64,000 bases of DNA from Takakia lepidozioides. Taxonomy: Eukaryota > Plantae > Bryophyta. Positions 3,470-56,999 of the stretch are shown here, in pieces (position 1 is the first letter of the stretch; every line of letters begins with the position of its first letter). The stretch covers positions 5,828,001 through 5,892,000 of the forward strand of contig CM060734.1 in NCBI GenBank assembly GCA_030704615.1, given 5' to 3'. Both the position numbers and the translations under genes were made by a program. The notes beneath the pieces are model-generated. The model did no database searches, was not told where the DNA came from, and saw nothing but the letters and a program-made list of their open reading frames with translations.

Positions 3470-4507
3470 ACCCCCCAAGACCCCACCACTCTCCCCATTT
3501 GGGTTGCTGCTTTATTAAAGTTCGTGCACACACAAGTATTCGTGGTAACGATGCGGCCAACCTCCTTGCCCAAGAAGGCGCCTCCAGGTTGTTGAACGGT
3601 TTTTATGCACCCATCCCTTAGCCAATCTTGGTGGGTATTCTAGATGGGAGGCATTGGAATACTCTAAGTATTCCTGCCATTCAGAATCGGATGGTATCAT
3701 GACGGATTAATGTTGCACTATCATTTTGGCTATGACAAAGCCTCATGGCATCAGTGAACTTGGGTATCCTTTACGTAGATAGGGTGGTTCTCCTTAAGAA
3801 AGATAATACATTGACTTTGTGTAAGGATCTTGACTAGCTTATGCAGCTACAAATCGCTACTAACTATTCCTTAGTGCTGGTGTTCCTATATCAGTATAGT
3901 CCTAAGTGTTAAAGGATCTCAATATCCGGATGTTGAGATCCCATGTTGTATTCCTCTTTAAGTAACATAAGCATCCACATTACCAAGCTCAAAACATAGG
4001 CACGGTTTCCGAATAGGTATCATCATCTTTATCAGCTCATAGTAGCAATTACAAGGTCCTTTGTCCCTCATCATGCTCTCTCTAAGTACAGTATACTCTG
4101 GAACAAATGCATAGACTCCTACGTGCAGGCATAAGGCAGTGTCATAACTCAAACTCCCCGAATACAAAGTGCGATCCCCTGTACAGCTTTGTTCATGTCT
4201 TAAATACCCTACGGCTTCCTTAACCGCCATCATAGCCTATGGTTATTTAACTCCCCTATGGTGGAATAACTCCTATGGTAGAAATTGCTTAACTCCCCAA
4301 TGACTAACTGATGTCTTTGGTTGGTCCATGGCTATGGTTACCATAGACATATCATAGTGACTACTGTCGATGGTCAGCCTATGGCTATGGTGAGCATAGA
4401 CGCCTCATAGTGCCCTATGGCTATGGTCTATGCTGTAATCGCAAAAAATAGGGGTACTTCCCTTCTACCTCTACCTTTGCCACTATGCTAGCTATGGCTG
4501 CTCTACC
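2780..4507 (-). mobile_element. Degenerate LTR/leader of an LTR retrotransposon carrying a homolog of the ORF0 N-terminus
   Basis: Minus-strand start GTAGAGCAG at ~4506 matches the LTR end at 7437; CTATGG-rich U3-like repeats 4240-4500; TATA-like TATTTAA near 4200; ORF 3515..3700 (YLEYSNASHLEYPPRLAKGWVHKNRST) aligns with ORF0 at 48386. Left boundary uncertain. Confidence 0.5.
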
Positions 4508-4509
4508 TA

Positions 4510-6393
4510 GTGTACACTATCCTCCCCTCTGCGAGAAAGGCCGTGTCCCACGGTTCACCTTCGTTGCTCCGTATGCTGCTAGGGAGTTGGTGTGACATCT
4601 CTGGTCCGGGAAGGTGATCGGTGTGTCTGAGAACCCGACCTCCTTTGTCTATCCCGAGGCTCCACATCCCATCCTGTAGGCCTGCGGGCACCTTCCTCCT
4701 CCGTGGTCGGCATGTCCATGTCCAAATCCAGGCCCATGTTCTACAAGGACAGAAACAATGGTGAGGGAAAATAGAAATGTGTGGAATAGAACGACAACTG
4801 CAGTAAAAGTCTGACATCACACCTCCCGCATGTACTGACCGAACTGTCCATACCGGTAATGCCACCACCCCAACCAACTGTGCAAGGCTCGTAGATTGAT
4901 TGTCTCCACTGCACCTGACGTGTTCCACTAAGCCTCGATGATTGCAAACCTCCGGGTCATCAAATGTAGGTGCATCCTTCCACGCCATACAAAGGACACA
5001 ATGTTCAGCTTGGAAGGAGCTTGCAACAAATTTGCCTGTGTAGTGAGAAAGACTCTGCATCCAATGAAATCCACAGGATCTCTCTTTCCCCTCCATCGGA
5101 ACATTTGGGTCCTCCCCATACATACGCCGCACCGCTGCCCAGTTGGCCTGAGCATTGTCTGCCATGAGTCCCCTGAAATTTGGCTTGGGCAACCCCACCC
5201 TTGCCATCTGCTTGTTTATCCCTCCCACAAATGTATCTCTGATTGTGTGTCATCCCTTTTCATCTCACATATTGCAATCGTCATGAGCCTTTTGGAGTGA
5301 TAGTCTAAACATGCGCACCCATGGTCACCCACTGATGGTTTGTAATTCGCTTGATGTGGTCAAACATCACCCAAGCATTCGATAAGTTCCCATTTGTCAT
5401 TCGAGTGACCAAGTCCACTCCACTCCCAGGCCAACAGGTGGACATTTTGAAGATGAAACAACGGTCGGTTTCACTGCCTTGCCCTGGAAACCTGCTACCT
5501 TGGATGTAGTCATATCCACATCTTTGTTTCATCTCCAGGATTGAGTGCATGTCCGACCCCCGGCCGAATTCTTGCTTGCAAGAGACGACGTGATTCCGCA
5601 CATTCAGGCTACAAACGTGCGAGACGGACTCCAAGAGGTCCACCATGTCCTTGTCGTCCAAGGGCACCCGGTCCTTTCCATCTTCAGACATAATTTTTCC
5701 CAGAGCAATCTTGTGGGCTACCTTCAGCTGAATCTGCTTTGGTCTGGCTCCGGGGCTCAACTTCACCTCCTCCTTTATGATCTCATGTGCTTCATGCACA
5801 GCCTCTAGCATGTTGCCTCTCGCCAAGGGGTGGCAGTGCACACCAACGTGTATGCAAGCTCTTGTCAAGTCTGGCAACATACTACCGACATAATATTGCT
5901 TGGCTTTGCACATTGACATGCATGTTTGTGGATCTTTGCAATGGGCGCACTTGAAAGTACTCGCAAGAGCCTGGCTGGAGACAATGAATGGCTGATGGGT
6001 TGTGCCCGTCCAATCGTCTTGTTTCTCCGCCCTCCTTATATCATAATTATGGGCCCATAATTTTGTTTTCGTTTTGTTTTTACAAAAACAGGGGGAATAA
6101 TCCCCATAGGACACCAAATTTCCAGTTACGCAGGTTACGTGTTTGCCTCCCGAGGTCGATGGGAATGTGATCTTTGAGTTTCCACCTGTGGAATGCATTT
6201 CCGTCGACTGGGACACCTTACATAGGCAGGAACGGAAAGGCGGTACCACATTTATGTCCACTGTACCAGCTGGCACATGGTTGAACGGAAATGCGGTGCC
6301 GCATTTCCGTCCCAGGGGACACCTAAAACATGGTGGAACGGAAATACGGTACCGCATTCCGTCCGGGATGTTCCTTTCCAAATTGTGAAACAT
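4510..6393 (-). pseudogene. Mutator/MULE-like DDE transposase, frameshifted and 3'-disrupted
   Basis: Cys/His zinc-ribbon (CAHC...CMSMC...HVGVHCH), then VMFDH, a 1-bp frameshift near 5305, MADNAQANWAAV and ERSCGFHWMQSL (MULE CxxH motif). Confidence 0.7.
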
Positions 6394-6649
6394 ATGCCAA
6401 AATAGTAAGACAGTAAGAAATCACATGTTCAGGAAGAAGTCCGATTATGTAAGATTGAAAAACTTGCAGACTTCAGGCAGACAATGACAACAACCACAAC
6501 GACAACTATAAGAAGCTGAGGACATGACGATTCACAGGAAGAATCCATACTTCACCAAAATCTTTTATTTATTCTTGATGGGAACAAGTCCCAGCATCTG
6601 TCCTCTCTAAAAAACTATACTCCCCAAATGGAGGACAGGACTACCACGG

Positions 6650-7090: not shown

Positions 7091-7129
7091 CTTGTTCAGC
7101 ACCTCCCTGCTGGTAGTCGCACCTATTTA

Positions 7130-7437
7130 CTGATTTAGTAGGTAGTAAGTTAGTACGTAGTAAGAGGGGGGGGGATCCCTTATATAGCCTCTCAGGGCGG
7201 TGGGACCCTTCTAGAAGCCCGCCGACCCTGGGAGCCTTCTAGAAGGCCCTGGACACATGTCAACCCTACAGAACTCCCTATTCTAAATTTAGCCAATTCC
7301 TCTGTTCTTTTTTTGGACCCCCTCATCTCATTCCTTAATACACGTGGCCTTCCTACATAGGCGCCCCACTCTAATTCCTGGGCCACAGTAATTCCTGGAC
7401 CACTCTAGAATCAGGGCCCAAATGAAACTGCTCTACA
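7130..7437 (-). mobile_element. Truncated LTR fragment
   Basis: Minus strand begins TGTAGAGCAG at 7437, TATA (CTATATAAGGG) near 7185; no matching TSD found. Confidence 0.45.
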
Positions 7438-7595
7438 TATTATTCGCACCTATTTGACAAAAAGAAAAATGGTCCGACCACCCCCCTGCTGGTGGTCGCA
7501 CCTATTTAAAAATAGAAAATTCTGCGACCACCCCCTTGCTGGTGGACGCCCCTAAAAAAAAATGGTGCGACCACCCCCCTGCTAATGGTCGCAGA

Positions 7596-7832
7596 TTTTT
7601 TATTTTATTTTCATTTTTTTTTTAAAGGGAAACACCTGGGAGCGACAGCTCACAAATCAAGCCCCTTAGTAGTGAGAGGAGAAAATAACCTCTTTCATTT
7701 ATGCGCCATGAGGCGTAGGAATGGGGCACCACCCACGAACCATACCACACCCATCAAGTAGCAAGATTTGACCCCAGAATCGTCCGGGTCGCACTCAGTG
7801 CACTTAACCAACTGAGCTACTGACTGTTGGTA
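7596..7832 (-). mobile_element. tRNA-derived SINE inserted in array A
   Basis: Minus strand: A-box TAGCTCAGTTGG, B-box-like GGGTCAAATC, A-rich tail (T-run 7596-7623 on +), possible TSD AGAT(T/A)TT. Confidence 0.6.
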
Positions 7833-8462
7833 GATATTAAAAAATCGGAAAATTATGCGACCACCCCCTGCTGGTGGTCGCATCTATTAAAGAAAAGAAA
7901 AATAGTGCGACCACCAGCAGGTGGTGGTCGCACCTATTTTGTTTAAGCAAAATTTCTGTGACCACCCCCCTGCTGGTGGTCGCACATAATAAAGAAAAGA
8001 AAAAATGATGCGACCACCCCCTGCTAGCGGTCGCAGCTATTACTAGCGTGCGTAGTCATGATGACAGCGCGCGCCCCGAGTGTGGAGGGGGGCTTATAAG
8101 GCCTTCGAGGCCATTCTCTCCCTCACTTTTCTCCACACCAGGACTTGGTGGGCGATGGAATGTTGCATTATTTGTCGTTGAGTCTGAGTGGAGAGGGGTG
8201 CTATTGGTTGGGTGGGGGATATTTTGGGCCGTTGGTTTCTACGAAATCGATGCTGAGTACCTCCCGGGAAGCCCTCCTCTGGCACCCACGTTTTTTTCAT
8301 TGCACATTGCATTATATCACTTAGAACTGCGGAGGGAGTGACATGTGCCTCTAGTATTTGGGGAGGATTCATTAGGAAGTAGGATTAGGTACGATTTAGG
8401 AGGGTTGGGAGGACATTTTTCTTAGCAAACACCTGTCGAGTAGGGGTAAGCCAGAGCCATAA

Positions 8463-11022
8463 ATGGCGGAGGAGGAAGACAGAGGAGGTCATCCCAGGGA
8501 TGACGATAATGAACCTGGACCTCCAAAAAAAAAACCGAAAGGGGCCAGGCGCGAACTTCGTTGAGATATATACAATGACCCCAACATTCTTGCGGAACCA
8601 GGTTGGGAAATTTGGAGGTTGGGGCAGCGGTGGTCGCTTGGTGACTGCAGGAAATTTGTGGATTGGTGTCACATAAATCGTTTGTGGCCCAGAGATAGGC
8701 ATGATCCACAAACCAAACAAAATCAAACTAGCTTGCATTCCTGCGCCAACCCGCATTTCCGCCACAGGGCAGAGGAGGTACATACAACATTGTGGGATCA
8801 ACCGCTCGTCAACAACAAGGTCCTGTATTTATTTGCGCCCATGTTGTACACAAAGTTGATTTTATTGCGACCAGTGGATTGGCAAACTGCCACTGCGAGA
8901 CAGCGTACTAGACTATACATGTTCTCTGATATCCCAGACTTGTATATACATCAGGGGCAGGACAACATACGGTTGGATGGAAACGACGACGTGGAAGAAG
9001 AAGGAAAGGCAGACGCATGGTGGTGTGGGAGGTGCAGGAGGACCAACCTCCAGATTATACGCCGCAACAGGTCTCCGCAGCCGGGCCTTCAACGTCTGAG
9101 GTGGAGGGGGCGAGGTACGCTCTCCATTGGAGGAACAGTTGGCCGCACATGAACAGCACATCAAGGACCTGCATGACATTGTTCATTTGCAACGGTGGCA
9201 AATAGCAAAGTTGCTGGAAAAAATGGGGTTGTGAACTCTCGACAGCGTACGTGGTGTGCTTCAGGACCCGAGGCCAATCACCAACGAGCAAGACATATTG
9301 GCGCGTTTGGATATGCCACCAATGGACATTGACCGCGTCATCGACGAGGTTGACTCAATCGGACATGGGAATGAAGTGCAAACGCCTGAACTGGACCCGG
9401 CGAGGGTTGAGGAAGAAAGACTTGCGGCGGAGAGGGCAAGAAAAGGGAAAGACCCCATAGTGGAAACTGGGGAATGTTCAGCCGTGCAAATTACATCGGC
9501 CCAGGAACAGGAAGTAAAGCAGCTTGTGGGGGAACGTGAGCAAACTAGGGCTGTTGCATATCGGTACTCAAATGTCATGCAAATCCGATCGTGGCCATGG
9601 TTGAAGGGGAATTGGTGGAATTGGGTGACATGGGCGGGCCATCTAGCATCGCGGGAAACACGGATAGAAGAAGCGTTGTCCTCCCTCCAACGTGCAGCAC
9701 GTTTGTGGAATCGAAGCGTAGATAGCATCTCTGCTGATTTGCAAAGGCACGACACTGTGCGTGATGTATTCACGTCGAAGTACACTGGATTCACCACATA
9801 GGGTGATGTGGATGTCATGTTTGAGCACTGTGTGCATACAATTTCCGATACCAATAAGAGCATAAACTGGGATTTGGAAGTAGAGGAGGAGTGGGACAGC
9901 AGGCCGAGGATGTCATCCGACATTCATGAGGAATCACGGACATGGATACCACGGAGCAATCTAGCGTCATGGGTAACAGATGGTACGATGTGCACAATGT
10001 GCCTAAACCCTTAGGACCGGAGGGAGGCTATATGCTTGGTTCATGTGGCCATTTGTTCCACCTCGCATGTCTCATATCGGCAGCCATGCGAGCCACCCAA
10101 TGCCCTGACTGCCGTGGACCAATCCATCGACGTTTCTATGAGTTGTTTGGGTTGCAAGACAATATGCCCATCGGATACGAGTACAACCAGTACAACACGC
10201 CATTGGATGTGGAGCCTTATGATATTTTAAATTGTCGGCATTGGGGGGAGACAATGACATGGGATGCTCCAAGAGAGATGCACGCCTTGAATGCTATGAC
10301 ATTATTTAGGGTTAAAGATTCGGTGACCTTTTGGGTGACATCCAACTGGGAAATAACCGTGCGTGCTAGAGGCATACGGGACCCAGTCCAAAGGGAGTTT
10401 TTTTGCCGGAACTTGGGAGGGCATTGGAGCTGTACCAGACAAAGATAATTCTTCCGTTTGCCTAAGGATCCATGGGTGCCAGCGGAAAACGACCCATACA
10501 ATCGCGAACCGATTGGGAGAGACTATTTCTGAGGGAGTTGGAGGACGTTAGCATCCGTTGGGATGATATGAATGAGAGTACTGGGTGCCTCGTCGGGATG
10601 AAAGGCCATTTCCTCCAGAGTTGCGCAGAGACCCCCAACAGGAGGAGGTGTTGGACAATTTCTAGGCTGACATCACGAGTGTTGTAAAGTATTGGCAGAA
10701 CACATGGCGTGACCAAGTTGCCCCTATTCCAGGGGTGTTCTTGCCACTTCCAAACATATCGGAATTAATTGAAAAATTGCATGAAGCCGTAGCAAGAGCG
10801 ACAAACCCGGCTCTGGCAAATGTGGAAGAGAGTCAGCACTCGCCTAGAACGCTACGCATGTTGGCAAGGGTGGACCACACAACACTGGGTCCTTCTTTGA
10901 CCACTCGAGCCCAGGCTCGAGCTCTCCGTACTGGTGGAGGCACGTCCTCTACACCCGGAGCATCTTCATCAACATCTGGAGATGACGACAACGAAGTAAT
11001 TAATCTAGATGAAGATGACTAG
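8463..11022 (+). pseudogene. TE-borne RING-H2 E3-ligase-like gene (NLS, helical domain, coiled coil, RING-H2, C-terminal SIM-like tail), disrupted
   Basis: ATG 8463 (MAEEEDRGG...PPKKKPK); joining frames gives CTMC-x14-CGHLFHLAC-x10-CPDC at 9991-10112; ends EVINLDEDD*; TATA-like CTTATAAG near 8093. Confidence 0.7.
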
Positions 11023-11099
11023 AAATGCTAGAAACGTAGGGAGTAGGCCAAAGGTCTCAGGTTGCGAAAACTTAAATGTGCAACCCACTGTATAGTCTA

Positions 11100-14000
11100 C
11101 GTAATTTTTGGAAATACGAGGTTCATCCTTTGAACCATTTTTGAATGACCTCATACTTGTTCGGTACCTGTTCGACGACATGTACAATATACTGGCAAAG
11201 TTTCAAAACAATCAAAAATTGCTGAATGAAGATACCATTGGTTCACCCATTGCAATATTTAAATCGAACTCATACTTGTCCAGTACCTTTAAGAGGGCAT
11301 GTACAATGCAATGGCAAAGTTTGAAAGCATTCAAAAAATTGGCACATCAAGTAACCATTGGTTCATCATGTGAACCATTTTTTTATTGATCTCATACTTG
11401 TCCGGTCCATGTAAGAGGGCAAGTAGAACATACTGGCAAAATTTCAAATCATTCAATTTTTTTTTTATCAAGGAACCTTTGGTTTATCCTTTTCACCATT
11501 AACGATTAATCACGAATAAATGAACAGGCGAATAAATCATTTGTCTCCCCATCGACACCAAGCCATTCCAGAATGTAATTGAATTTAAAATTAATTTTAA
11601 GCCAATAAATAGGTTTGCACTGCCTTTCATTAGGGGTTTTTGGCACGTATCGATTTGTTTTTGGCTTAATTTTGTTCTGCGGCTTCAAGCATCCCACTGC
11701 TACTCCCCCGCCAAAATTTGGACCAATCAAAAATGCCCCAAAAAAAAGGTGTTCTCTTCGCTCACTATTGCAGAACTCTCTCTGAAGAGTGCATGAAGTA
11801 GAGCACAAATCAAGTTTGGAGTGCAAAACAGGCAAGAAACTGTGGTTTTGGGTCCAAATGAATTTTGATCGCTCCCAAATTTGGCACGCACGTTGCATAT
11901 GGAGTCATTACACGTCCCATTCAAAACCAAAATGAAAAAAAAAACATGAGCACGCGAAATGCAGTCCAAACAGGTCCCAAGGTAATAGCAGATCCAACAG
12001 AATACATTCAATGGGTGAACGGATGGTTGCCCATCCAAATCATTTTTGTTTGCTTCCAAACTTTGCCAGTACGTTCGAGACACCCTCTCACAGGTCCCAG
12101 ACTAATATCAGATCAATCAAAATTCATTCGATGGCTCAACGGATGGTTGGCCATCGAAATTATTTTGGTTTGCTTTGAGACTTGGCCAGTATGTTCAATG
12201 TACCATGGAAGAGGCCCCAGAGTAATATGAGATCAATCAAAATTCGTTCAATGGGCCAACGGATGGTTGCCTATCCGAATGATTTTCGTTCGCTTTGAGA
12301 CTTGGCGAGTGTGTTCAATGTACCCTCTGATAGGTCCCAGTGTAGTATGAGATCAATCAAAATTCGTTCGATTGGCCAATGAGGCATTCATTTGTCATCT
12401 GGTTTTTGTTCATTGCGAAAAATAAATCATGCAATGCGTGCACGGCTATTGCACCCATTGAACGAATGTGGTTGAAGCCCCTCTTTTGCCCGCATGTGCT
12501 TGAACATGTGTGCGACACATGTGCGGAGACACAACAGACAAATATCGACGCCAAGCCATTCCAGAATGTAATTGAATTTAAAATTAATTTTAAGCCAATA
12601 AATAGGTTTGCACTGCCTTTCATTGGGGGTTTCTGGCACATATCGATTTTGTTTTTGGCTTAATTTTGTTCTGCGGCTTCAAGCATCCCACTGCCAAAAT
12701 TTGGACCAATCAAAAATGCCCCAAAAAAAAAGTGTTCTCTTCGCTCACTATTGCAGAACTCTCTCTGAAGAGTGCATGAAGTAGAGCACAAATCAAGTTT
12801 GGAGTGCAAAACAGGCAAGAAACTGTGGTTTTGGGTCCAAATGAATTTTGATCGCTCCCAAATTTGGCATGCACGTTGCATATGGAGTCATTACACGTCC
12901 CATTCAAAAACAAAATGAAAAAAAAAACATGAGCATGCGAAACGCAGTCTAACAGGTCGCAAAGTAATAGCAGATCCAACAAAATACATTCAATGGGTGA
13001 ACGGATGGTTGCCCATCCAAATCATTTTTGTTTGCTTCCAAACTTTGCCAGTACGTTTGAGACACCCTCTCACAGATCCCGGACTAATATCAGATCAATC
13101 AAAATTCATTCGATGGCTCAACGGATGGTTGGCCATCGAAATTATTTTGGTTCGCTTTGAGACTTGGCCAGTATGTTCAATGTACCATGGAAGAGGCCCC
13201 AAAAGTAATATGAGATCAATCGAAATTCGTTCAATGGGCCAACGGATGGTTGCCCATCCAAATGATTTTCGTTCGCTTTGAAACTTGGCGAGTGTGTTCA
13301 ATGTACCCTCTGATAGGTCCCAGTGTAATATGAGATCAATAGTTAACGATTAATCATGAATCATCCAACAAGGGAACTGTTGGTTCACCCTTTGAACCAT
13401 TTAACATTGACATCATACTTGTTCAGTAACTTTAAGAGGGCATGTACAAGACACTTGCAAAGTTTCAAATCAATCCAAAATCATTTGGCAGGGGAATGAT
13501 TGGTTCACCCATAGCCAATTTGAGGGGCTAAAATTGCCATTTCAGGGGCTGCACTAGCAATTGTCATTTCAGGGGCTAGAATTGCAATTTGAGGGGTTGG
13601 AATTGACAATTTCAAGGGCTTAAATTACAATTTGAGGGGCGGCCGGGGTTGGTCATTTTAGGGACTGACATTACCAATTTTAAGGGCTTGAATTGCATTT
13701 TGAATTGTAATTCAAGGGTTAGAATGGGCCATTGGGGGGCTAGAATTACCAAAGCAATGACATCCAAAGCAATATAAAATCATTTGATAGCGGAATGATT
13801 GGTTCACCCTTTCAACCATTTTTTATTCACGTCATACTTGTCCGGTACTTGTAAGAGGGCATGTGGCTGACACTTGCAAAGCTTCAAAGCAATGTAAAAT
13901 CATTTGATAGGGGAACAATTGGTTCACCCTTTCAACCATATTTTACTGACCTCATACTTGTCTGGTACCTTTAAGATGGCATGTGAAAGACACTTGCAAA

Positions 14001-15030
14001 GCTTTAAAGCACTCAAAAATCATTTGATATGTTCATGATTGATTCACCCTTTCAACCATTTTAGATTGACTTGAAACTTGTGAAAGACCTGTAAGAGGGC
14101 ATGTACAAGACACTTGCAAAGTTTCAAATCAATTTAAAATCATTTGGTAGGGGGACGATTGGTTCACCCTTTAAACCATTTTAGATTGATGTCATACTTC
14201 TCAAAGACGTGTAAGAGGGCATGTAGAAGACACTTGCAAAGTTTCGGAGCAATAAAATATCATTTCATCGGGGAAGTTTCCATTCACCCTATCATCCAAT
14301 TTTGAATTGAACTGGATTTTTACTAAATAAAATGATTTAGAGGCCATAGGATTGTGAGGCGCATGGTATGGGGCGCAATGATTTTGTTTTTGGCTTGATT
14401 TTGTTCTATGAGTTGAACCCTCACACTACCACATCATTCCCAAAAAATGTACCAAAAAAAAATGTTTGAAAAAAAACGTTCATCATTTGCTCTATGCTCA
14501 CTATTGCAGAACTCTTTATGAAGAGTGCATGAAGTTGAAGATAACTTCACCTTGGAGTGCAAATGAGGGAATAAAATGTGTTTTGGATGCAGACGATGTC
14601 TGTTCATGGTGATATTTTGCATGCAATCCTTCATGTTGTTATCAAGCATATGGCTTCATAATGGAATTAAAAATAATTCATGTGCAGGCGAAAGGTTGTT
14701 TTCTATACTACCTCCGTTATGAATTTGAATAACCCATTCAAACAACTTTGTTGAAGTTCAACTTTGGTCCATATGTGCTTAAGTACGTATAAATCACATA
14801 CACAAAGTTGCAAGTGAAGAAAAAATCATTTGCCCCCCGAACGACTCGTTAAACCTTTCAACCAATTTTCAATCACGATCATTTAATAGGGGAACTATTG
14901 GTTCACCCTTAGAACCATTTTAGATTGACCTCATACTTGTCCGGTAACTTAAAAAAAACATGTACAAGACACTCCCAAAGTTTCAAATCAATCTAAAATC
15001 ATTTGGCAGGGGAACGATTGGTTCACCCAT
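11100..15030. repeat. Complex satellite: ~120-bp monomers in both orientations, internal ~0.8-kb duplication and ~21-bp subrepeat (13520-13750)
   Basis: Monomer GGTTCACCCTT...TCATACTTGT...AAGAGGGCATGT recurs; 11960-12370 and 12960-13340 are reverse-complement monomers; 11535-12360 duplicates 12548-13340. Confidence 0.9.
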
Positions 15031-15219
15031 TGACCCGGTGTACACTGTTACTCTTTAAGATTCGTGGGCGTGGTGCTTGATTATCCCATATGATGGACCC
15101 AGGTGTCATGGCCAAGTAACAAACCATTAAAACATTATGGTACGAGACAAACACAATTGAAAACAACATTTATTCAAACATGATATACAGTCAGAGGTCT
15201 ACAAGTTTTTATCCATCCT

Positions 15220-16594
15220 CTAGCAATTTTTGGGCTCAGGCCAATTGAATAGCCCTGTCATGAAACGCTTCACAACATTTTCTAGTTTGTACCGCAACTC
15301 TACTGTGTTTACACACAAGTTTTCTAGAGCCGAAGCAAAACATGTTCCAGTAGACATATCGTTGAACAGGCTTGCATCGAACGTGTTACCCCTATTTATT
15401 GCCTGGGCTATCTTCCCAATTGCAAAGGTCTCTGATGGCACGGTTAGAGGGGGCCTATGAGGTGTGCCATTTGACTGGTTGTTGGCTACATTATGAACAA
15501 TTGCAATTTCAGGTGCAATCCACCATCTATGTACGAGAGTCTTTATCATCTTGTCTCTGCTCTCGAAAATGTACAACGTGATTTTTGGGTCATCCATCGT
15601 GGAGGCCATCCCCCAATCGCATTACCCGATGTACACATCTTCAGACTCTTGTGGAAAATGCAACAAAATGTTGTCGGGGGACATGTCGTTGTGCAAGAGG
15701 TGGTGATTATGGACGTTGAGCATGATGTGCAAAAACGCCCATGCCAATTGGGTGCGATTCTGTCGGAATCAAACTAGTCGGTTGACCTCCTGCATTTCCT
15801 GCTCCGCCCCTCGTCGTTCCATTAACTCCCTGTTATCCCGATCATTTCTCCATCGCAAAATACTTTATGATGCCAAAATGATGGAACTTTACAGCCAACG
15901 CCTCATTGTTATGTTGGACTTTGGCAAGCATTTGTTACGAGAACACCTGTAGCTGCCAACTTCGGAGGAAGAGTTGTTTGTGCTTGTGGATTGGTGGTCA
16001 AACATGGCAAAGGCCCACATCAAACGACGTACGAAACCACTCCCATGGAAGGCAGGGTCCTCGTCCGCGGATGCGGCATTGAACGTGAGATACATATCCA
16101 CAAACGCACATGTACAACAACTCGATGCGCCCAAACGGGGAGGGTTGGTACAATTCGGAGGATTAGAATTGTTGGGGATCAATTCATTTCTCCATCCTGG
16201 GAGCTAGCAAGGAAAACGCCCAGGGAGTTTACCTCAGATTCCATGTGGCATCATGGGCCCGGTCCTCCATCCATTTCGTGAACTCGAACTTCGCATTGTC
16301 CTCCTCCCATTCATCCCCGGCCAAAGCTTCCCTCATTCTTATCTCCATATTGTGTTGGAATCTAAGGAACCCCTCATTCCCATGTCGGACATACAAAAGA
16401 TTCAAACGTATTATGTCATTGTCCTTCAAATAATCCAGCACTACTTACTTCACCATCTTCGCGGCCTCTGCACTTGGATAGTCTTTTTTGTTGACCTGAC
16501 TATCTCGTTCATGTGCATGTTTACGCTTCCTACCTTTACGCCCACTTCCCGAGGAACCCCCTGACACTGCGTTCGGAGCAATGTTTCCGGACAT
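15220..16594 (-). pseudogene. TE-borne Ser/Thr protein-kinase-like gene, disrupted and partly inverted
   Basis: Minus-frame translation through stops: HNDMSPDNILL (HND 15693-15685), CDWGMAS (DWG 15618-15610), WWIAPE (APE 15516-15508), SETFAIG; N-terminal MSGNIAP...GRKGRKRKH (NLS-like). Confidence 0.8.
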
Positions 16595-17202
16595 GATGAA
16601 AGTACTCTGTGAAATAGACGCGGCTTCGTAACGGAAAACTAAACCCAGACTATTGATAACCTTATATACTATCAGACCAATTTCCTCACCCTCTATTGGT
16701 ATAGTACCTAAAGCAAACTGTCTCCCGCAGTCCCAGGAAAAAAAAGGCAAAAACTCCTCCCCCACACAAATCCACCTTCTCCCCCCCCCCACGGCTCAGT
16801 CCTGGCCACCGAAGTTGAAACTCCAAGAAGCCCCAGAAGTGCACTCAGAGAGAGGGAAAAAAGTGGGTTGAGAATGAGGGGTAGGCCCTTATATACTGCT
16901 TGGAGAGGCCTGCCTTGAGCGGCGCGCGACCGCCTCTGCTGCCCATTCACGCCTCGTCACGTGTCCACGTAGCGGTCGCGCCTATGGGTGGTCGCAGCTA
17001 ATAACAAAACAAAAAAACTGCTGCGACCCCCCCCTGCTGGTGGTCGCACTTTTTTAAAAACAAAACGAAAATGTGCGACCCCCCATAAGCGGTCACACCT
17101 AATAACAAAAAAGAAAAAGTCTGCGACCACCACCGGCTGGTGGTCGCACCCATTTAAAAAATAATTAAAAATATGCGACCATCCCCTGCTGGTGGTCGCA
17201 CC

Positions 17203-20200
17203 CAGTGTCCGGGAAATATTTTGAGTTGAACCAGCCAGTGGCCGCTCATTTTCAACACCAACCGGCTAAGTGGGTTGGGGGGTCGGCTGCTGCCCCTTAG
17301 TGGTAACTTCAGGCGGTCAATTTCCTACATATTGTTTTACAACCGGTAATTTTTTTATTTTTTTTTGGTGTGTTCGGCTATAAATCCGGCCATTGTACAT
17401 ATCAACCGGTTCATTTCCTGCAAATGAAAATTAAATTCGGCTGCATACAACAAATTCAACAAATGAAACACAATAAATAATCGCAACCAATTTTAAGCAA
17501 TTCAAACAAGTGCAGAAAAGTATCCTTGGCAGGAGTTGAACCTGTCAATGCCCTCCACCAGTTGGAGGCCAAGGATCGAACCCTTCTAAAATGCAAGGAC
17601 CTCAACCAAAAGTTGAAGGGCCTTGAATTTTAGAAGCGTTACCTATCTAAACAAACAAACAAACATAAATTCAAAACTGCAAATCATCATTCGTACCTTC
17701 TGCATATGATGGCCCACCTTCTGGTTGTCCAACTATTGGCTGTCCAGCTAAATATAGCTCAGGATGAGAGAACAAATGTTTGAAGTTTGTGGAGTTCTTC
17801 CACAAAGATATGGCCTCAATCAAAACAGGTTGACATGCCTGCACACTTGGCCCTTCCAAAGCAACACGAAGCACACTTTCCAAGTTCTTTGTTTTCAACT
17901 TGTTTCGAAATTTAGTTTTGATTGAGTTTTGAACTGAGAATGCCCTCTCACATGCGGCAGTGCTTACACATTGAACTCGAGCAATTTCAGAAAGCACAAG
18001 CAATTTTCATACTTCATCGTTAGAGAAGGGTTCCAAGTCACCATGCCCCAAAGATCCTTGAAAGTTTTCTCCATCCACTCGGTACTTGCCTGTAGTTTGA
18101 AAGCAAAGAACTCTCGTTTCACCGCTGCTATGTCAACAAGGGCAGGCAATGTCCTTCCTGCAATATGTCTTTCGACACCATAGTGCGCACATAATATTTC
18201 CAACTCTACTACACCCCAACTTGCTAACCCCACTTGCCTAGTTGGTAGGTTACATGGACTCAATATTTTGAATGCACTTACAACTCCGTTGTCCTCAAAA
18301 TCTGGCATCCAAAGCATTGCAAACAGCCTCTGCATAAAGCTTTTGGAAGGTAAGTGCTGCCTCCAAATCACCCCCCATCCTCTCTCGTGTCATTTGTACC
18401 CATGAAAATTGGATCCCCTAATCTCAGAGGCTAGCCGCCTCAAATACCCACCAGGAGGACCAAATTCCGGATGATGTGATAACCCATTTCCTCATTGAAG
18501 GTAGATTGGTTCAAATCCGTGCTATCCTCAATGAAAAACATTCGTATTTGTGCAATCTCTGTCTTAACTATGGACCCAATGCTGGTTACATCCACAAACT
18601 TCCATTGGAACACACGTGAGAGTAGAGATAGACCGTGCAACATATCAGCCAAAAAATACAAGACATAAATCATTTTGAATGACCTAAGCTTGTTATACAA
18701 AAGAGAGGCTGATCCATCATCATTGGCAACCGGCACATCTCTAAAATACGTGACAACACTCTCAAGACTATCACAAAGCGATGTCACGGCCTGCCACCTA
18801 GATAACCAACGAATCTTGTGAAACCTTTTGAGGCACTTCTGAGCATCATTAAGCTCGGTCTGCAAAGCTTGCAAGGTTGCCTTACGCTTAGATGATTTGC
18901 GAAAATGACCAACAAGAGAGTTCAAAAGTGTGTCAACCTCATTTGAAATAAGATGACATGCTGATGTCTTGGCAGCTTCTAATGCTGCCAAGTTGGTCCT
19001 ATGTGCTACGCAATGGACGGCCAACATAAAGGGGTTTACCTTTTGCTTAAGACGAGCAGCCACGCCGGATCGAGCCCCCACCATGGTTGCTGCCCCCATC
19101 CGAACCAAACCCCAAAAACTTATCTACATCCAAACCCCACTCTTTCAAACTAGTTAGTAAACACTCATATATCATTGCGGCATCCTTCTTGCCATCAATA
19201 ATCTGAAGTAAACCAAAAACAGAGTGACTGGCAAACCCTCTTCAACAAAAGAAGCAAAAACAACAAGATGACCGGTCACTGAAATGTCAGTTGACTCATC
19301 TATCATGATTCCATAGGACTTGGAATCCTTCACTCTATCCAACACCTTTTTCTGAACAACACATGAGATACAATACAATATATCAGCACACGACTTCTCA
19401 GTACAGTTTCTGGGTAATACAAGCTTTGAGAGTAACCAAAAGTTGACACAAACCTGGAAATTTGCTAAATGGCAAGGCCTCCAAACCAATGTAGTAAGCA
19501 ACTTGGAAAAGAGCCAAAACAGCATCATCACAAGCTCGATTAGCACTAGCTATGGCTTTCTCCATGGCTTTCTTACCAGATTGTAGGGCCCAAGAGAACT
19601 TACGATGCTCTTCTGACCTAGCATGGTCTTGGAATGAACTCACCTTGACATTGACAGAACCAGCATTTGCAAAGACTGTCCTCCCTCCTTTCCCTCTACA
19701 AACTTTACAAAAACCCTACCTAGATCATGGTTAAACTCAATCCAATCAAATTGAGTGTACCAAACATCTTTCCATGCTTTCTGGGCTGCCTCTACACTAT
19801 TCGATGGCTTGTCCATACCACTTGAAGATGAGGCAGGGGGGACAGCGGAAGGAGACTCCTCATCACAATCACCCAGTGCGACCAGCCCTAAATAACATAT
19901 TTCTTAGATTCCTTTGGCGCTTGGCCATAGCCAAGACCTTACAAAATACAAATTTATAGCACGGAAATTGCAACAAGGAAGGGCCAGCGAGTGCAAGCAG
20001 GCGGGAGCGTCGGCAGCACATCAACATACAGCCAGTGGTAAGTGCGGGCCCCGGCAGGTGAGATGTGGACTTAGCAAAGAACGAGTGCAAGGCCTGCCAA
20101 CTGCCTGAAGCAAATCAGAAAATAGAAGGGGAGGTGGGTCAGAAATGGGTGCGAGGTGAGATGCAGCCCTCCCAGCCGCCTTTGCCCGACACAAAATAGA

Positions 20201-21143
20201 CACAGCTTGTGCCTGCTGCAAAGCAACAGAAACCGTGGTCGAAAGAACGGTAGAAGAACCGAAGGGGGAGGCCTACCAATGCCTTTGCTTTTTACTGCAT
20301 GATGAGCACAAAGTATGCAGAAAGTCATGTAGCTGTAGACTTCGAAAGGCAAAAGTCATAACCTCTCACTAGGAAAAGCAAAGACATAACCAAATGAAAC
20401 AAAGACTCATGCCTGGGCCTTGAAGTGTGGTAGCACGCAGCGAGTGCAAGCAGGCGGGAGCGTCGGCAGCACATCAACATACAGCCAGTGGTAAGTGCGG
20501 GCCCGGCAGGTGAGCAAAGGACTTAGCAAAGAACGAATGCAAGGCTGAAAACATGCCTGGGCCTTGAAGTGTGGTAGCACGCAGCGAGTGCAAGCAGGCG
20601 GGAGCGTCGGCAGCACATCAACATACAGCCAGTGGTAAGTGCGGGCCCGGCAGGTGAGCAAAGGACTTAGCAAAGAACGAGTGCAAGGCTCTTCTAGGGT
20701 TTGCCCCCAACCACCCTGGCTCCGTCCGTTGGATGTAACCAGGCGTGGGCCCTGGCATGCTGGATTTCCGCCACGTGGCAAGGCTCTTCTAGTCTCTTCT
20801 AGGGTTTGCCCCCAACCACCCTGACCCCGTCCGTTGGATGTAACCAGGCCTGGGCCCTGGCATGCTGGATTTCCGGCACGTGGCAGCATTCAACGGCCAT
20901 TTTCCGTTTTCTTATAAGATAAGAACGGCTGGAATCCGTCCAGGCGTGCCAACTAAGGCATATTTCCGGCATTTACTGATACGGAAAGGCAAAAATCCGT
21001 CCTCTGAGTCAGGCACTCGGATGATTTCCTCTTGGGCCATTTTTTCCGTCGGTTCATTTTCCGGAGGTTTCATGTTATACCCGGAAATTCCAGGATGGCA
21101 CTCGGCTGGCATGTAACTGGCTGCCGGTTCTTCCCGTTCATTG
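17203..21143 (-). mobile_element. Full-length hAT DNA transposon (3941 bp)
   Basis: 8-bp TSD GTCGCACC at 17195-17202 and 21144-21151; imperfect TIR CAGTGTCCGGGAA / CAATGAACGGGAA; internal ~145-bp tandem repeats 19985-20690. Confidence 0.92.
17671..19900 (-). pseudogene. hAT transposase (ZNF862/DUF4371-type) with hATC dimerisation domain, frameshifted
   Basis: FCKVC...DHARSEEH zinc finger, IMIDESTD, HCVAHRTNL, IRWLSR, STAACERAFS...RNKL. Confidence 0.9.
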
Positions 21144-21360
21144 GTCGCACCTATTTAAAAAAAATGAAAATGTTGTGACCACCACCTGCTGGTGGTCGTA
21201 CCCAATTTAAAAAAAAGAAAAAATGTGCGACCACCCTCTGCTTGTGGTCACACCTATTAAAAAAAATGAAAATGCTGAGACGAGGCCGCCTGACCGGCGT
21301 GGGGCCCACTGTTGCAGAGCGTCCGCTTGCTCGCTTTGCGCTGCTACCGCTGTCGCTACT

Positions 21361-24300
21361 GCCAACTTTTCCTTCTTCTTGCTCTTCCTCCTGAGCTCTT
21401 CTCTTCTTCCTCATCTTCTTCCTCATCATCATCCCTCTTATCTATCCTGAGCATTCCCAATTGCACAATTATGTTGGCTGTTTTGAATGCCTCCTCCACT
21501 GTATTATGGGGTAGCATATCCATTTTCTTTTGTAACTCGGGTCTTAGTCCACTCACAAACCAAGTCTTCTGTAATCCTGGTGCTGATACAACAACTAGCT
21601 TTTTCATCATTAACTCCATCTTTTCCATATATTATTCAACAGTTTCATGCTTCTTTTGCCTCAACTGTTGTAAATTCCCATACACATCATCCTTAGTTTT
21701 GTTTGTCCTGAAACTGTTTCGGAATGTTGTACTAAGGCCATTCCAGGTTAGGAAATGATTATTAGGAAACCTTGCATACCATTCACTTGCTTTCTTGATA
21801 AGTGAACAAGGAAACAGTCTCAATTTAACATCATCGCCATTCTCATTGTTCACTATACACATGTGCTCAAATTGGCTGATGTGTACATCAGGATCCCCTT
21901 TTCCTGCATATATTGGAAAATGTGGCTTTGCCCGTGTTGGAGGTACCGCCATCTGTGGCCCTACACCCTGCCCTTTGACAGGTGCTGGTCCTTGAGGACC
22001 TGCTGTTGTAGTGGTAGAACTCCCACCAGGTGTTGGCCCCTGAGCACTCCCTGTTGCTGCCCCCCCTGTACTTGCAGTACCCTCAGCTCGAGTTGCACTA
22101 CTTCCCACACTCTCCATCCCCCCAGAGCCAGATCCAAGCTGCCCGCCTGATCCCCCTGAGCCGACACTTGTGTTGGCTTGTGATCTAAGTGCTCCACTTG
22201 ATCCAGGTCCAACAGGTTGGGATGTCCTGGTTGTAGTCTCAACCTCAACTGTTGGGTCTACTTCTTCATACTCTTCATCTTCCAAGTTCTTCTCTCTGTT
22301 TTCATCTTCCAAGTTCTTCTCTTGGATTTCTTCTTCCTCACTCATATAACTCAACTGACGTGGTGTTGGAGAGTCTGAACTCTCCATTGGCTCTGCCACA
22401 TCTTCCTCTCCTTCTTGTCGTGTGTTTTCAGAAACTCTGGAGTTCCTGCTTTTGGTGTTCCATGCCAACTCTGATCAAAGATTTCTGTCAAATCTTTAAT
22501 CCCAGGTGTACCTCAAGATCTTTCCCCTCGTGGCTGATCTTCTTCCTTACTTTACCAAATCCCTTAAAGCTTTCTTGTAAAGAATAAGAAGGAGTGGCTT
22601 CCAATTCTGGTTCTTCCGGTATAGGTGATGTACTCTATAGCCTTAATGGTTGAGAGGTCCAGATGATTCCCCTATGTCTATTCCTCTCGCTCCCAGAGAT
22701 ATGGATAATTAGCTTTCAAATAACTTTCTCTTTTTGCTGAATATCTGTGGAGTCTAGCTTCATTTTCATAATTCATGTCCCATGACTTTCACTCTTTAAA
22801 TGAGGCAATACCAAAACTCTCTTAAGTAGTATCTCTCTCGTATATGCCTGAATTTTTTTCAAGCTTTATGCACCCTTGGCTATATTAGATGGGCTTCGTT
22901 GCCATATAACCCATATGGCAAGCACGTCTGAAAAGTTTTTCTTGGTGTAAGTTTGATCCACAGATATCCTTAGGAATCCAATTCTTTACCAGTACAAGTT
23001 CTTCATGCATATGAGTAAAACATTCACTTTCCGTTCCTCCCAGCCTTCAAACTCCACTCGTTTAATGGATAGCAACGCTATCACATAACCAATGTTGGCA
23101 ACCATCTAGCTCTCCTTTTACAGGCCACTTGATAAATCTTTATCACTCCTTCTCTCCAGACCCTACTCTGGATCACACCATACACTCTCTTAGATGTTTT
23201 CTTTGCAACCGTCTTGGCAATTCCAAGAACCTCTGAAAGAATTGTTTTTGGACAATATTTTCTTTCTTTCTTAGTTTCACAGGGAATTTGATTCACATCA
23301 ATTCCTTGATTCTCATCCCCATGATCCCATCGGAGCCTGTTGACCACATCGGGTTGTTCTTGACTCAGTTCCCCAGTATGGGTCTTCCAAATGTCGAGCG
23401 GGCTTTTACACTCACCCATCCCCTTAGCTATCCGGGTGGAACTCCAAGATAGAAGAGTTGGAAATCTCTAAATACTTAGCCCCTCTCAGAACAATCAGTC
23501 ATGACCTACAACTAGATGTATCATGGGGTGCTTCATATTTGTTATCCTTCTCACATTCATGTTAGCAAAGTTACTTAACTGTCTATGATTAAGTATCAGA
23601 TTGCTTCTCAATCTACCATGTTTCATCTACTCAAACTTCATTCCACAGCTTCACTCATTCTCTCTACGACGTGTGAATATACAATAATAATCATATTAAT
23701 ATCTATCAGTATCAGGCCGAAGCATGGGTGTCTCTAACTGTTCTACATTGCAGCTCTACAGCTTGCATGTATCAAGCATCATCTCGTCGTATCTCCTCCT
23801 CTATGTAAACTCCATCCCTATACTCCAAGATCGTGCTCTCCGTCGTGATGCCAGAACATGTCCCAGCCGTGATCTCCCCAGTAACGTCCAAGAAGTTCCC
23901 CTCCCCTCGTCGCTACTCTGCATATTCTACTTGCAAGCTGTTCGAACCGCCTAATTAACTAACTGCCATCCCAGACAGAATGCACGTTCCCTCTGCAGAT
24001 GTCGTTACCACACAATCATTCCCTGCCAATGATAATCGTCCCCTGTGAACGCTGTGACAGGCTGTGCCAAGCTATGTCGGGCTGTGACTTGCCGTGTCAG
24101 ACTGTGACTGGCTGTGTGAAGCTGTTTCGGGTTGTGACTGGCTGTATCAGGCTACGTCTGACTGTGTCAGGTTGTGTCGGACTGTGTCAGGCTGTGATAG
24201 GCTTTGATAGACTGTGATAGATTGTGTCGGGCTATGATAGGCTGTGTAAGCCTGTGACTGACTGTGTGAGCCTGTCTGCCACCCCTAAGGTCTGTGTCTG

Positions 24301-25899: not shown

Positions 25900-27830
25900 G
25901 CGAATGAGACTGCAAGTTAGGCTTAATCAGTAGGATTAAGCAACCTGCAGAAATGTTGATTGGTTTAGCTATCCATAAAACAATTACTCTATAATTGTTT
26001 CTGAAGGCATACCGTCGGACAACCTCTGTTGCATGTCTTGGGAAATGGGTAGTGGTGCTGAGAGCCTGTTTTGTCTAAGTCATAAACCAGCGATTAACAA
26101 GGAGCTGCAACATACACTCCATGTACTGTCCTAGAAATGGGGGCAGAATGAACAAGCATACCTTCCAGTACGGTAGACTCCAAAGACATGATCTTCTCTT
26201 CATGCCATGCTTTTTTGAAAGGTCCGAGTCCCCCCCTGGCCTACCTCTGTACGCATGAAACTCTTCAACGTTCTGAAGCTGATCCAATGCAGTTACGGGT
26301 GGGGGGGATGCTCTCAGCTCTATGGCCCCATTGACATGGGCGTGATTGCACCTGTATGGATGGGTTCGTGGCAAGTACCGTCTATGCCCAAGGTACAACA
26401 TTTTCCTGCAGGCCGGGGAGTACCTAGCCCACATACTGGACAGGCCTTGTAACCTTGATGTGCACACCCCGCCAACAACCCATATGCGGGATGGGATAGT
26501 CATGTACAGACCACATTAGAATGGCTCTCGTTTGAAACCTTCGACTTCCTTCTTCCTCCATACCTGCATCAATAGCCCATACACCTTCTTCCCACAACAA
26601 AATCAACTCATCCCCCAAAGGCTGTAAGTACACATCGACATTGTTGTTCTTCATGGATTCTTTTCCAGGAATCAGAAGTGTCAACATCAGGAAGAAGCGT
26701 TTTGTGCTTAGCCAGGGAGGGAAATTGTAGTTAATGCAAAGGACGGGCCAAGTAGACCATGATGGTTGTTTTTGTCCAGAAGGATTGACACCATCAAGAG
26801 CCAAGCCCAACCTCAAATTGCGAGGCTCTTGACCAAATGCAGGCCACTTGTTGTCAATGTGTTTCCATGCAAGACTGTCACATGGGTGCCTCATCTTCCC
26901 GTCTTCATTTCTATTCTGTGCGTGCCACACCATAAACTTGGATATGTCCTTGCACTTGTACATTCGTGGAAGCCTGGGAATGAGAGGAAAATGCCTCACA
27001 ACCTTTTGTGGAACTAGTGTCTTCATGCCAGGAACATAGCGGCTTGCCCGACATTTTGGGCAACTAAGAGCTTTCCGCAACTCACCCCTATAAAAAAAGA
27101 GGTGGATGCGTTGCCGAAGCAAGCGTAACTTATGGTGTCACTTGACCCCATAGGGCTCCTGCCTTCCAGTGGGAAGGTGGACACCGTAACGACTTCCAAC
27201 AGGGTGGATTGAACCCACAACCACTCGTGAGAGGGTATGTGCCCTTACCACTGGGCTACATGCTAGTTGTCCCTCGCCCCTATACAACACACACCCTTCC
27301 CGGCAAAGCATGGATTTTCATGTGTGCAAGGCCTAGTTTTGATACAAGCTTTTTTCCTCATAGTGAGACTTAGACAGGGAATTTGGTTGTGGCAATAGAT
27401 GTCCGTGCATCAATTTGAGAAGCTCGTCCCCTGCTGCATTAGAAACACCGTGAGTAGCACTTACGTTTAAGAGGAGCAAGCTGGCTGCCAGACGACTTGT
27501 TCGGCAGCCAGGATACAGAGGGGTCTTCGCCGCATATTCATACTCGGATGCCACACGGGCGCATAGTCGCCATCTCCCCCGGCTTGCCCGCTCTCTTCGT
27601 GGGCATTCACTTGTTGTTGTCCACCACTGTCCACAATCGAAAATGTCTCCCGCAACATCCTCAGCATGTCCATTTGCGAGTCTAATCCTTCCCCACCCAC
27701 AACCAAGCGCAGACTTCCAGCATCGTCGTCCTGTGCAGACCGCGGTCCATCCCCGTTCCCCTGCACCAGTCACTTCCGCACGTGTCATAATACGTGTCAT
27801 CCCCCATCTGCAATCAGCCAAAGCGGAATT
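25900..27830 (-). pseudogene. CACTA TnpD transposase (Transposase_21), disrupted, with a SINE insertion
   Basis: CVLYRGE...CPKC, FPLIPRL, MRHPCDSLAWKHID, EPRNLRLGLALDGVNP, STWPV, YLGHRRYLP. Confidence 0.93.
27093..27272 (-). mobile_element. tRNA-derived SINE (family B, copy 1) with T-tail
   Basis: A-box TAGCCCAGTGG, B-box GGTTCAATCC; 12-bp TSD CTC(A/G)CCCCTATA at 27081-27092 and 27273-27284; removal restores the TnpD LYRGE-LRKALSCPKC sequence. Confidence 0.85.
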
Positions 27831-28199
27831 CAAAAAGTACGTTGAAAGATTTTGAGATAGAACCCAGAGGATAGAGGAGAGGCATTCTCACCGGAAGAAA
27901 GCGCAGGTTGGGATCTCGAAAGTCTTGGCAGTGCTCAGAAACTGCAGGCGCCCACCATGGCATTCACCATATTTGCCGCATACCCAGTCTCCTTGCATTT
28001 GTTCTTCTTGTTGCCATAGAATCGCGTCTAACAGACGATCTGGGTCAGAAGCTTCTGCCATGGTCTGAATGAGTTGACCTCCCCACGAACTTACTAATTT
28101 TTTACTGTCTACTGCTCCAACTGACTACCTATGCGTGCGTGACAATGTGAGTATGTGCCCTCACCCTGAGGCCTATTCTTTTTCTTTTTGTTCCAGTGT

Positions 28200-34289: not shown

Positions 34290-35108
34290 GGTCAAAACAA
34301 GAACAAAAAACCAGAGAATAACAACCAGATCAAAACTCTTAGATCTCACACATGGCCTTCACTTGAACAATCCCGAGCTTCTTGCTCATAAATCATCAAA
34401 TGGCTCAATGGCCTGCAAGGTGTGGGGCTAGAAGCCAACTCTAGCTCCCACGACAACAAATGCTTCAATGGCATACAAGGTGTGGGGCTAGAAGTCAACT
34501 CTAGCTCCCACGAAAACAAATGCTCTAATACTATGAGGATCAAGCTCAACCTTCGTAGGACCTAGGCTCCTCAAGAAAACTAAGAGAAAAGTATGACGCC
34601 TCCCAAAGGGAGCGTAACTTATGGTGTCACTTCACCACAAGGGTTACTGCTTTCCAGCTGAAAGGTGGACACCTTCATGACACAGCAGCCGTGGTTTGAA
34701 CCCACAACCACATCCAACGTGGTATGGGCCCATTACCATTGGGCTACATGTTGGTTGTCAACTAAGACTAAAACAAGAGGAAGCAAGACACAAGCAAAAC
34801 CAGATGCACAACTAGATGAGGAAACAAAGGGGGCCTTGCTCCTCTTATATACTACTTTTGCCTTCATAAAAAAGACTCATTAAGATAATGAGTAATAATA
34901 TTAGTTTATTATTATTACTCCATGCTGGATTTCATCCCACAAGATGGATTTTCTTCCAATAGGATGAATGATTGTTGACGTTGTTGCTTGCGCTGGATGG
35001 ATGAAGTTATGCGCTCCCCTTGGCTGCTCCGGCCAATCAGATAATGAATAAACATTTTAAAGTGGATCACCACGAGTGCTCCTCGCCTCGTAATTTGGTG
35101 CCGCTACA
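34290..35108 (-). mobile_element. LTR (minus orientation) containing a SINE
   Basis: TGTAGCGGCACC start at 35108, TATA (TATATAAG) near 34848, ~60-bp duplication 34400-34520; 3' end approximate. Confidence 0.55.
34586..34759 (-). mobile_element. tRNA-derived SINE (family B, copy 2)
   Basis: Alignable to 27093-27272; A/B boxes; TSD AACTAAGA at 34578-34585 and 34760-34767. Confidence 0.8.
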
Positions 35109-47691: not shown

Positions 47692-47711
47692 GTCCCATGT
47701 CTTTCATATCT

Positions 47712-48386
47712 TCAATAAGGCAATAACCAAAACTCTCTTCTGTAGTATCTCTCGTATATGCCTGGATTTCTTTCAAGTTTTAATGCACCCTTGGCTATAC
47801 TAGAAGTCTCCGTTACCATATGGCAAGCACGTCTAGAAAGCTGTTCTTGGTGTAAGTTTGATCCACAGGATATCCAATACTTTACCAGTACAAGTTCTTC
47901 ATGCATGTGAGTGTAAACATTCACTTTCCGTTCCTCCCAGCTTTCAAACTCCACTCGTTTAATGGATAGCAATGCTATCACATAAACCAGTGTTGGTAAC
48001 CAACTTGCTCTCCCCCTACAGGCCACTTGATAAATCTTTATCACTTTCTCCAGACCCCACTCATGATCAGCATCATGCACTCTCTTAAGAATGTTTTCTT
48101 TGCAACCGTCTGGCAATTCCAAAAACCTCTGAAAGAATTGTTTGGACAATCTTTCCTTCTCAGTTCCACAGGGAATTTGATTCATATCAAATTCTTTGAT
48201 TCTCCAACCACCATGATCCCACCAGATGCCTGTCACATCTGGTTGTTCTTGACCCAGTTCCCCAGTACGGTCGCCAAATGTTGAGCGGCTTTTACTCACC
48301 CATCCCTTCGCTATCCGAGGTGGAAACTCTAAGATATAAGAGTTGGATATCTCTAAGCACTCAGCCCGCTCAGAACAATCAGTCAT
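47712..48386 (-). CDS. ORF0 (224 aa) upstream of gag with an internal F-box-like motif
   Basis: Open ORF ending 20 bp before the gag ATG; FLELPDGCKENILKRV...VIKIYQVACR...W. Confidence 0.6.
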   Translation of the reverse strand: MTDCSERAECLEISNSYILEFPPRIAKGWVSKSRSTFGDRTGELGQEQPDVTGIWWDHGGWRIKEFDMNQIPCGTEKERLSKQFFQRFLELPDGCKENILKRVHDADHEWGLEKVIKIYQVACRGRASWLPTLVYVIALLSIKRVEFESWEERKVNVYTHMHEELVLVKYWISCGSNLHQEQLSRRACHMVTETSSIAKGALKLERNPGIYERYYRREFWLLPY

Positions 48387-48691
48387 GACCTACAGTTAGT
48401 GATACGTCCTTCTCCTCTCGATGACCAAGGCGTGATCCCAGAAGTGTCCCTCCCTGTTGCTACTCTGCCTATTCTACTTGCAAGCTGTTCTAACCGCCTA
48501 ACTAACTAACTGTCACCCAGAATGTACGTTCCCTCTGTAGATGTTATTCCCACACAGTTGTTCCCTGCCATGGTAACCGTTCCCTGTGAATGCTGTGACG
48601 GACTGTGTCAAACTGTGAATGTTATGACTGTGCCGAGCTGTGACTGGTTGTGTCGGGCTGTGTCAGGCTGTGATAGACTGTGATAGGCTGT

Positions 48692-53565: not shown

Positions 53566-53784
53566 ACGGAAACGCCTGCTTGGATGTCCATGCGCCCCGG
53601 TTATCAGCGTCACGTCGTCAATCAGCGTCAGGTCACGCCAGACCTGACGCTGACGGGACCTCCGTCACGTCAGGTTTCGGGAATATTCTAGTAAAAAAGT
53701 ACCGGGTAAAATATTGCCACTTAAGCAGCCACGTTGCCGACACGGTGGCGGTGACAAATATATTTTGAAAAATAATAAAATGAA

Positions 53785-56986: not shown

Positions 56987-56999
56987 CAATTTAGAGTGT

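Follow-up and report, generated by a model that had tools for sequence, protein, structure and literature searches.

A probable remnant of a multi-gene hAT transposon lineage with linked kinase and RING-H2 genes in the moss Takakia lepidozioides

A stretch of 64,000 nucleotides from the moss Takakia lepidozioides (GenBank assembly GCA_030704615.1, contig CM060734.1, positions 5,828,001 to 5,892,000 of the forward strand; hereafter the window, numbered from its first letter) holds a unit in which a RING-H2 gene and a protein kinase gene lie between palindromic arrays. This unit is very probably a dead internal fragment, cut on both sides, of a large multi-gene lineage of DUF659-type hAT transposons in mosses and related plants. 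Typical hATs are one-gene transposons that encode the transposase alone. An earlier note on this DNA had called the unit apparently uncharacterised, and in the literature searched, which excluded most subscription papers, hATs that bear kinase and RING genes are likewise not described.

The identity of the unit follows mainly from intact relatives, which were reached via the kinase. Its C-terminal piece, used as a query, led to a family of intronless kinases of ~500 aa, the contigs of which (metagenomic or from Ceratodon) were examined, so that the linkage of kinase, RING gene and transposase was tested on independent loci. One metagenome contig, L011, contains a complete element of 15.8 kb with terminal inverted repeats (TIRs) at 445 and 16201, between which lie, in this order, the kinase, a gene for 343 aa, a RING-H2 gene for 1039 aa and a transposase with DUF659 and Dimer_Tnp_hAT domains; L002, L003 and L004 share its terminus, each next to a different flank. 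The same four genes are found in L008 and L017, in a different order in the latter, and L010 contains the kinase and the transposase, with no RING gene in the part of the locus examined. In Ceratodon purpureus, L012 has the kinase, the fourth (small) gene and the RING gene behind a similar terminus, and L019, probably two nested elements, has kinases, a RING gene and a DUF659 transposase remnant, with an end similar to the L011 type. Kinase-carrying hATs appear to be nested, as seen from a kinase fragment just outside the L003 terminus (L003:4-144) and a second terminus inside L019 (at 12242). The earlier suggestion that the unit belongs to a large DNA transposon with linked kinase and RING genes is borne out by the same linkage in L008, L011, L017, L012 and L019; the two are not a host gene pair, being multi-copy and linked at other loci. 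The relatives resemble known DUF659-type hATs in their short TIRs starting with CAGGG, their subterminal repeats and their DUF659 plus Dimer_Tnp_hAT transposase, and differ from them by their size of ~16 kb and by two or three accessory genes, each with its own array; the Takakia copy differs further in having neither ends nor transposase.

In the window, the arrays stand outside, and the RING gene (plus strand) and the kinase gene (minus strand) converge on a 4-kb fold-back satellite, with another hAT, marked by an 8-bp target-site duplication (TSD), inserted into the right array; this layout, as the earlier note had drawn it, is confirmed. Both genes are dead in this copy, a state that the note had overlooked together with an inversion in the kinase. 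They were searched piecewise, and no joined protein was constructed. The RING-H2 pseudogene (8463..11022) encodes a conserved N-terminal domain (~8544-8945), an acidic and coiled middle, the RING-H2 domain (~9990-10120) and a conserved post-RING region. It is interrupted by several in-frame stops (e.g. 8562, 9232, 9799, 10446) and by frame changes, one of which, a frameshift near 10011, splits the RING-H2 domain; all eight ligands of the C3H2C3 pattern are nevertheless present across this frameshift. The Pfam model zf-C3HC4 scored above its cut-off and other RING models slightly below theirs. A word-indexed search with the window RING piece gave no match, and against the RING genes of the relatives the window gene aligned in three collinear blocks with 29-48% identity. 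A SUMO-targeted ubiquitin ligase (STUbL) was considered as well, and this reading is unsupported, because the tail of the window gene that resembles a SUMO-interacting motif (SIM) has no counterpart at the C-terminal ends of the full-length relatives, in which internal SIMs were not searched.

The kinase gene (15199..16594) is an intronless pseudogene for a helical N-domain and a kinase fold, with the motifs HND..N, DWG and APE and a piecewise identity of 31-45% to the intact ~500-aa kinases. Besides indels, it has in-frame stops at 16445, 15769, 15622 and 15220, and the inversion, of 296 bp (15931..16226, now on the plus strand), bears the G-loop and the catalytic-lysine strand. The dominant copies in the species are not inverted, because at high depth the contigs link 15931 on one strand to 16227 on the other, and in these copies two of the stops of the window kinase are sense codons. 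Where the window and the other copies differ, the window has T or A against C or G in 56 cases versus 29 in the opposite direction (run X1), a lean that would fit a long-methylated copy. The depth of the kinase contig was ~3,100 in one run, compared with 40-60 for rare joints, which fits tens of copies, although depth is not copy number. In a quick tree, where the window kinase was entered as one reading frame with X at stops, it grouped with the kinases of the relatives in a clade of 99% support. Between the two genes, the satellite (11098..15104) comprises a 120-bp unit repeated ~15-17 times in alternating orientation, together with a 983-bp duplication, duplicated linkers and 21-bp units.

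Among the relatives, both proteins appear to be kept as enzymes. Of the 52 full-length kinases, 51 retain K, HND, N and DWG, and none of the eight RING proteins lacks a RING ligand, while between lineages the synonymous differences are saturated (pS 0.75-0.85) and the nonsynonymous ones are not (pN 0.27-0.45). The model of an intact kinase shows a eukaryotic protein kinase (ePK) fold with a helical N-domain, in which the catalytic Lys, HxD..N and DxG are present. The RING protein and the fourth gene share an N-terminal domain of 140 aa with conserved Cys, His and Trp; in the fourth gene (L011:4704-5732; L017:3987-5165; L012:13424-13921), which has its own array and is absent from the window's unit, this domain is followed by a Gly/Tyr/Ser-rich low-complexity tail. 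The model of the RING N-domain folds confidently (pLDDT 84), and its nearest predicted structure lies in the PF20167 (Transposase_32) cluster at a borderline TM of 0.48, a predicted likeness that may serve as a hint only. No PDB match by sequence or fold, in a library whose holding of the VANC structure was not checked, and no Pfam match were found for this domain, and Atlas feature searches with it and with the kinase N-domain were blank. A kinship of the RING N-domain with the window's 33-kb transposon open reading frame (ORF) was also tried, and the comparison gave no match.

The second shared property of the relatives is the array. Array A in the window consists of 14 palindromic units (GCGACC-N-GGTCGC, period ~50 bp, A-rich spacers), eight at 7100-8034 and six at 17023-21251, and the strict unit pattern has 15 matches in the window (10 in array A and five in array B, a related one), where Markov-resampled sequence gives 0.03. 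Four units (7835..8042) stand immediately upstream of the putative RING promoter (8067..8099, plus strand), a GCGCGCG tract followed by TATAA, and another four (16987..17202) upstream of the putative kinase promoter (16889..16928, minus strand) with TATATAA and GCGCGCG. As the earlier note had remarked, the GCGCGCG tract lies between array and TATA at both promoters; it occurs at just these two sites of the whole window (8067 and 16922), with a TATA-like site ~25 bp after each. In relatives of the array type, each gene likewise has a CpG-rich palindrome array directly before its TATA, and CpG-rich motif clusters were found within 1 kb upstream of 14 of the 14 genes examined, transposases included (window, L010, L011, L012, L017, L019), with a motif sequence that varies between families. 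The arrays are promoter-linked and internal, rather than the boundaries or termini for which they had been taken. A second DUF659 hAT transposase remnant (53762-57000, plus strand) follows a TATA and the 14 palindromic units of array B, the arms of which are mostly GCC/GGC versus ACC/GGT in array A, with the change on both arms and the palindrome preserved. A MULE-like remnant recognised by motifs only (4506-6420) has its own 53-bp palindromic array at 6229-6358, and palindromic promoter arrays seem common to several DNA transposon types in the Takakia genome.

The copy in the window ends abruptly on both sides. The left break (7099/7100) cuts an array unit (7100..7130) against the DUF4218 reading frame of a CACTA transposase, and the right break (21280/21281) cuts the last unit against a gypsy gag; no terminal repeat and no CAGGGTT-type end is present on either side, and the two flanks share no TSD, the 8-bp TSD that is present being that of the inserted hAT. 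No transposase lies inside the unit, and DUF659 homology in the window is confined to 55-57 kb, behind the different array. We term this copy a remnant of a hAT lineage because its TIR, TSD and transposase are all missing. At 21352-21361, a possible TIR for the right side, accompanied by a putative TSD, was rejected because gypsy-family sequence starts at ~21281, where contigs of that family begin with other sequence before. The transposase at 55 kb was not adopted as the missing half of the unit, considering its different array, its distance of 34 kb and its closer similarity to the transposase of L010, the kinase of which falls into another clade than the window kinase. Within the array unit, the two breaks share one position, directly behind the GAC of the left arm, which may or may not be chance.

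The arrays also received three independent later insertions. The left array is divided by a 307-bp TG..CA insert (7131..7437) that looks like a solo long terminal repeat (LTR), has no matching TSD and is followed by three units (7444..7600), and then by a tRNA-derived SINE-like insert with an A-rich tail (7600..7830, minus strand), assigned on its sequence, in which ARAGORN found no true tRNA; both inserts had escaped the earlier note. The right array is split by the separate, later hAT (17203..21143, minus strand; 3.9 kb), which is no part of the unit and has an 8-bp TSD (GTCGCACC), imperfect TIRs and a frameshifted transposase with Dimer_Tnp_hAT; two full units and the cut unit remain beyond it (21144..21281). 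The empty-site joint of this hAT is present in other contigs of the same species. Its family is multi-copy, and contigs show several internally deleted forms joining ~17270-17320 to ~21100, which are MITE-like (miniature inverted-repeat) derivatives.

Several observations weigh against the assignment of the unit to this lineage. Because the copy itself has no TIR, TSD or transposase, its hAT ancestry is deduced from homologous genes and their layout, and its kinase sits on a long branch of the quick tree. None of the relatives retrieved matched array A or the satellite at the DNA level. In L011, the sole two-ended contig, the flanks, compared for an 8-bp TSD, are unlike, as expected of a collapsed metagenome assembly. 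Gene order varies among the relatives, in which kinase and RING gene are otherwise co-oriented or divergent and convergence is seen in L019 alone, which may consist of two nested elements. Kinase and RING-domain genes are present in L018 and L020 too, but with no array motif and no transposase in view. The close copies L011 and L008 give w = 0.45-0.63, an uninformative value from merely 10-19 changes, and the stretch was found in none of the RNA runs searched.

Overall, we consider it likely that the hAT-remnant identity together with the following mechanism explains the unit. In live copies, an element protein, either the transposase or the RING N-domain, would bind the repeated palindromes and switch on all element genes together. 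Sequence-specific activation of an element's own copies is known from plant transposases and TnpA (bioRxiv 10.64898/2026.08.24.746577), and the targets of VANC are tandem repeats that are family-specific (PMC5735166). The kinase and the RING ligase, acting in trans, would then target nuclear proteins, in the first place silencing factors at the element, and keep the element expressed; this counter-silencing role is proposed tentatively, at somewhat less than an even chance. The copy in the window would have lost its termini and transposase through deletions that broke inside the arrays, and then decayed. A more far-reaching form seems doubtful: an early-land-plant hAT lineage would possess its own signalling and degradation module, in which the RING ligase, its N-domain directed to DNA or chromatin, and the partner kinase are recruited to every promoter array and remove host silencing factors.

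With the identity unchanged, the kinase and the RING ligase could alternatively target the transposase of the element itself, through phosphorylation-triggered activation or destruction, and so time or limit transposition. The combination of a kinase with an E3 ligase is classic for phosphodegrons; on every contig of sufficient length the two genes have a DUF659 transposase nearby, and these transposases have a long acidic, Ser/Thr-rich C-terminal tail of ~300 aa beyond the dimerisation domain. However, most hATs manage without such partners, and L010, in the part examined, has the kinase and transposase only, so that we regard self-regulation as possible though on the unlikely side.

It is improbable that the segment from array to array is a cassette moved or reshuffled by recombination at the palindromes, independently of hAT ends. 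The coincidence of both breaks at one point of the array unit would agree with such a cassette, as would the variable gene order and orientation among relatives in which each gene retains its array. However, the flanks come from two unrelated elements, no recombinase gene exists in the unit, the junctions are explained by deletion with 1-2 bp of microhomology, and the arrays, having drawn three independent insertions, may simply be fragile or open.

The earlier note had pointed to MuDR, VANDAL and virus-like elements, and had reported MULE-like and CACTA remnants on the left side. The CACTA part is upheld by Pfam (DUF4218), and the MULE-like part by motifs only, with no Pfam match. A MuDR/VANDAL-like or CACTA element, with the flanking remnants as its own transposase and the arrays as termini, would account for the CACTA fragment that adjoins the left array, the MULE-like remnant further left and the convergent genes around a repeat spacer. 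But the left junction lies mid CACTA ORF and shows no CACTA terminus, a separate array accompanies the MULE-like remnant, and the long related loci gave no MULE or CACTA match with the window's MULE-like pieces and CACTA as queries, whereas DUF659 hAT transposases and hAT-type termini recur in the relatives; the N-domain model, without PDB match, lends no help either. We consider this origin very improbable, and the virus-like lead is unsupported. VANDAL elements with VANC are likewise large DNA transposons of plants that have accessory genes and, in their non-coding regions, repeated motifs specific to the family (PMC5735166; PMC13547354), but they belong to another superfamily, and the accessory proteins here are a kinase and a RING-H2 protein with no VANC or MAIN homology detected. 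CACTA/En-Spm elements with TnpA have repeated, partly palindromic CpG-containing motifs beside the promoter that could be bound by an activating element protein (bioRxiv 10.64898/2026.08.24.746577), but the unit and its relatives lack a CACTA terminus and Transposase_21, and their arrays occur at every gene, not just at the ends. MuDR, with mudrA and mudrB, has two convergent genes flanking a repetitive spacer; the convergence exists in the window, but it is not conserved among the relatives, neither gene here is a transposase, and the promoters lie outside TIRs.

That host genes were captured passively, in Pack-type fashion, and serve the element in no way is equally improbable: hATs and other plant DNA transposons do capture host fragments, but the genes here are whole, intronless and 500-1100 aa long with an own promoter array each, they retain catalytic residues despite synonymous saturation, and the searches named no close host counterpart.

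The remaining window is transposon-dense land-plant DNA. The gypsy gag regions at 21363-23510 and 46258-48394 are 88% identical, the first one being cut on its 3' side by the unit. A small insert (~27114-27271), present again at 34603-34759, interrupts a CACTA Transposase_21 remnant (26078-27900, minus strand). An ORF at 52175-52552 is ParB-like by motif, with no Pfam match, and has a 29%-identical relative in Ceratodon L012 (1042-1416). The co-occurrence of ParB with the RING and kinase genes that the earlier note had envisaged was not found, since this match is limited to one related locus and lies 7.5 kb outside the hAT terminus.

The dead copy in the window mainly adds a record of how such an element breaks down, with both breaks and three insertions within its arrays. 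The retention of the kinase and the RING-H2 protein across deep divergence suggests that this lineage has a transposon-encoded means of modifying proteins. If the more far-reaching form of the proposal is true, the module would counter silencing enzymatically and have no relation to VANC or TnpA. Since Ceratodon purpureus and moss-type metagenome contigs have intact copies, transposon counter-silencing becomes testable outside flowering plants.

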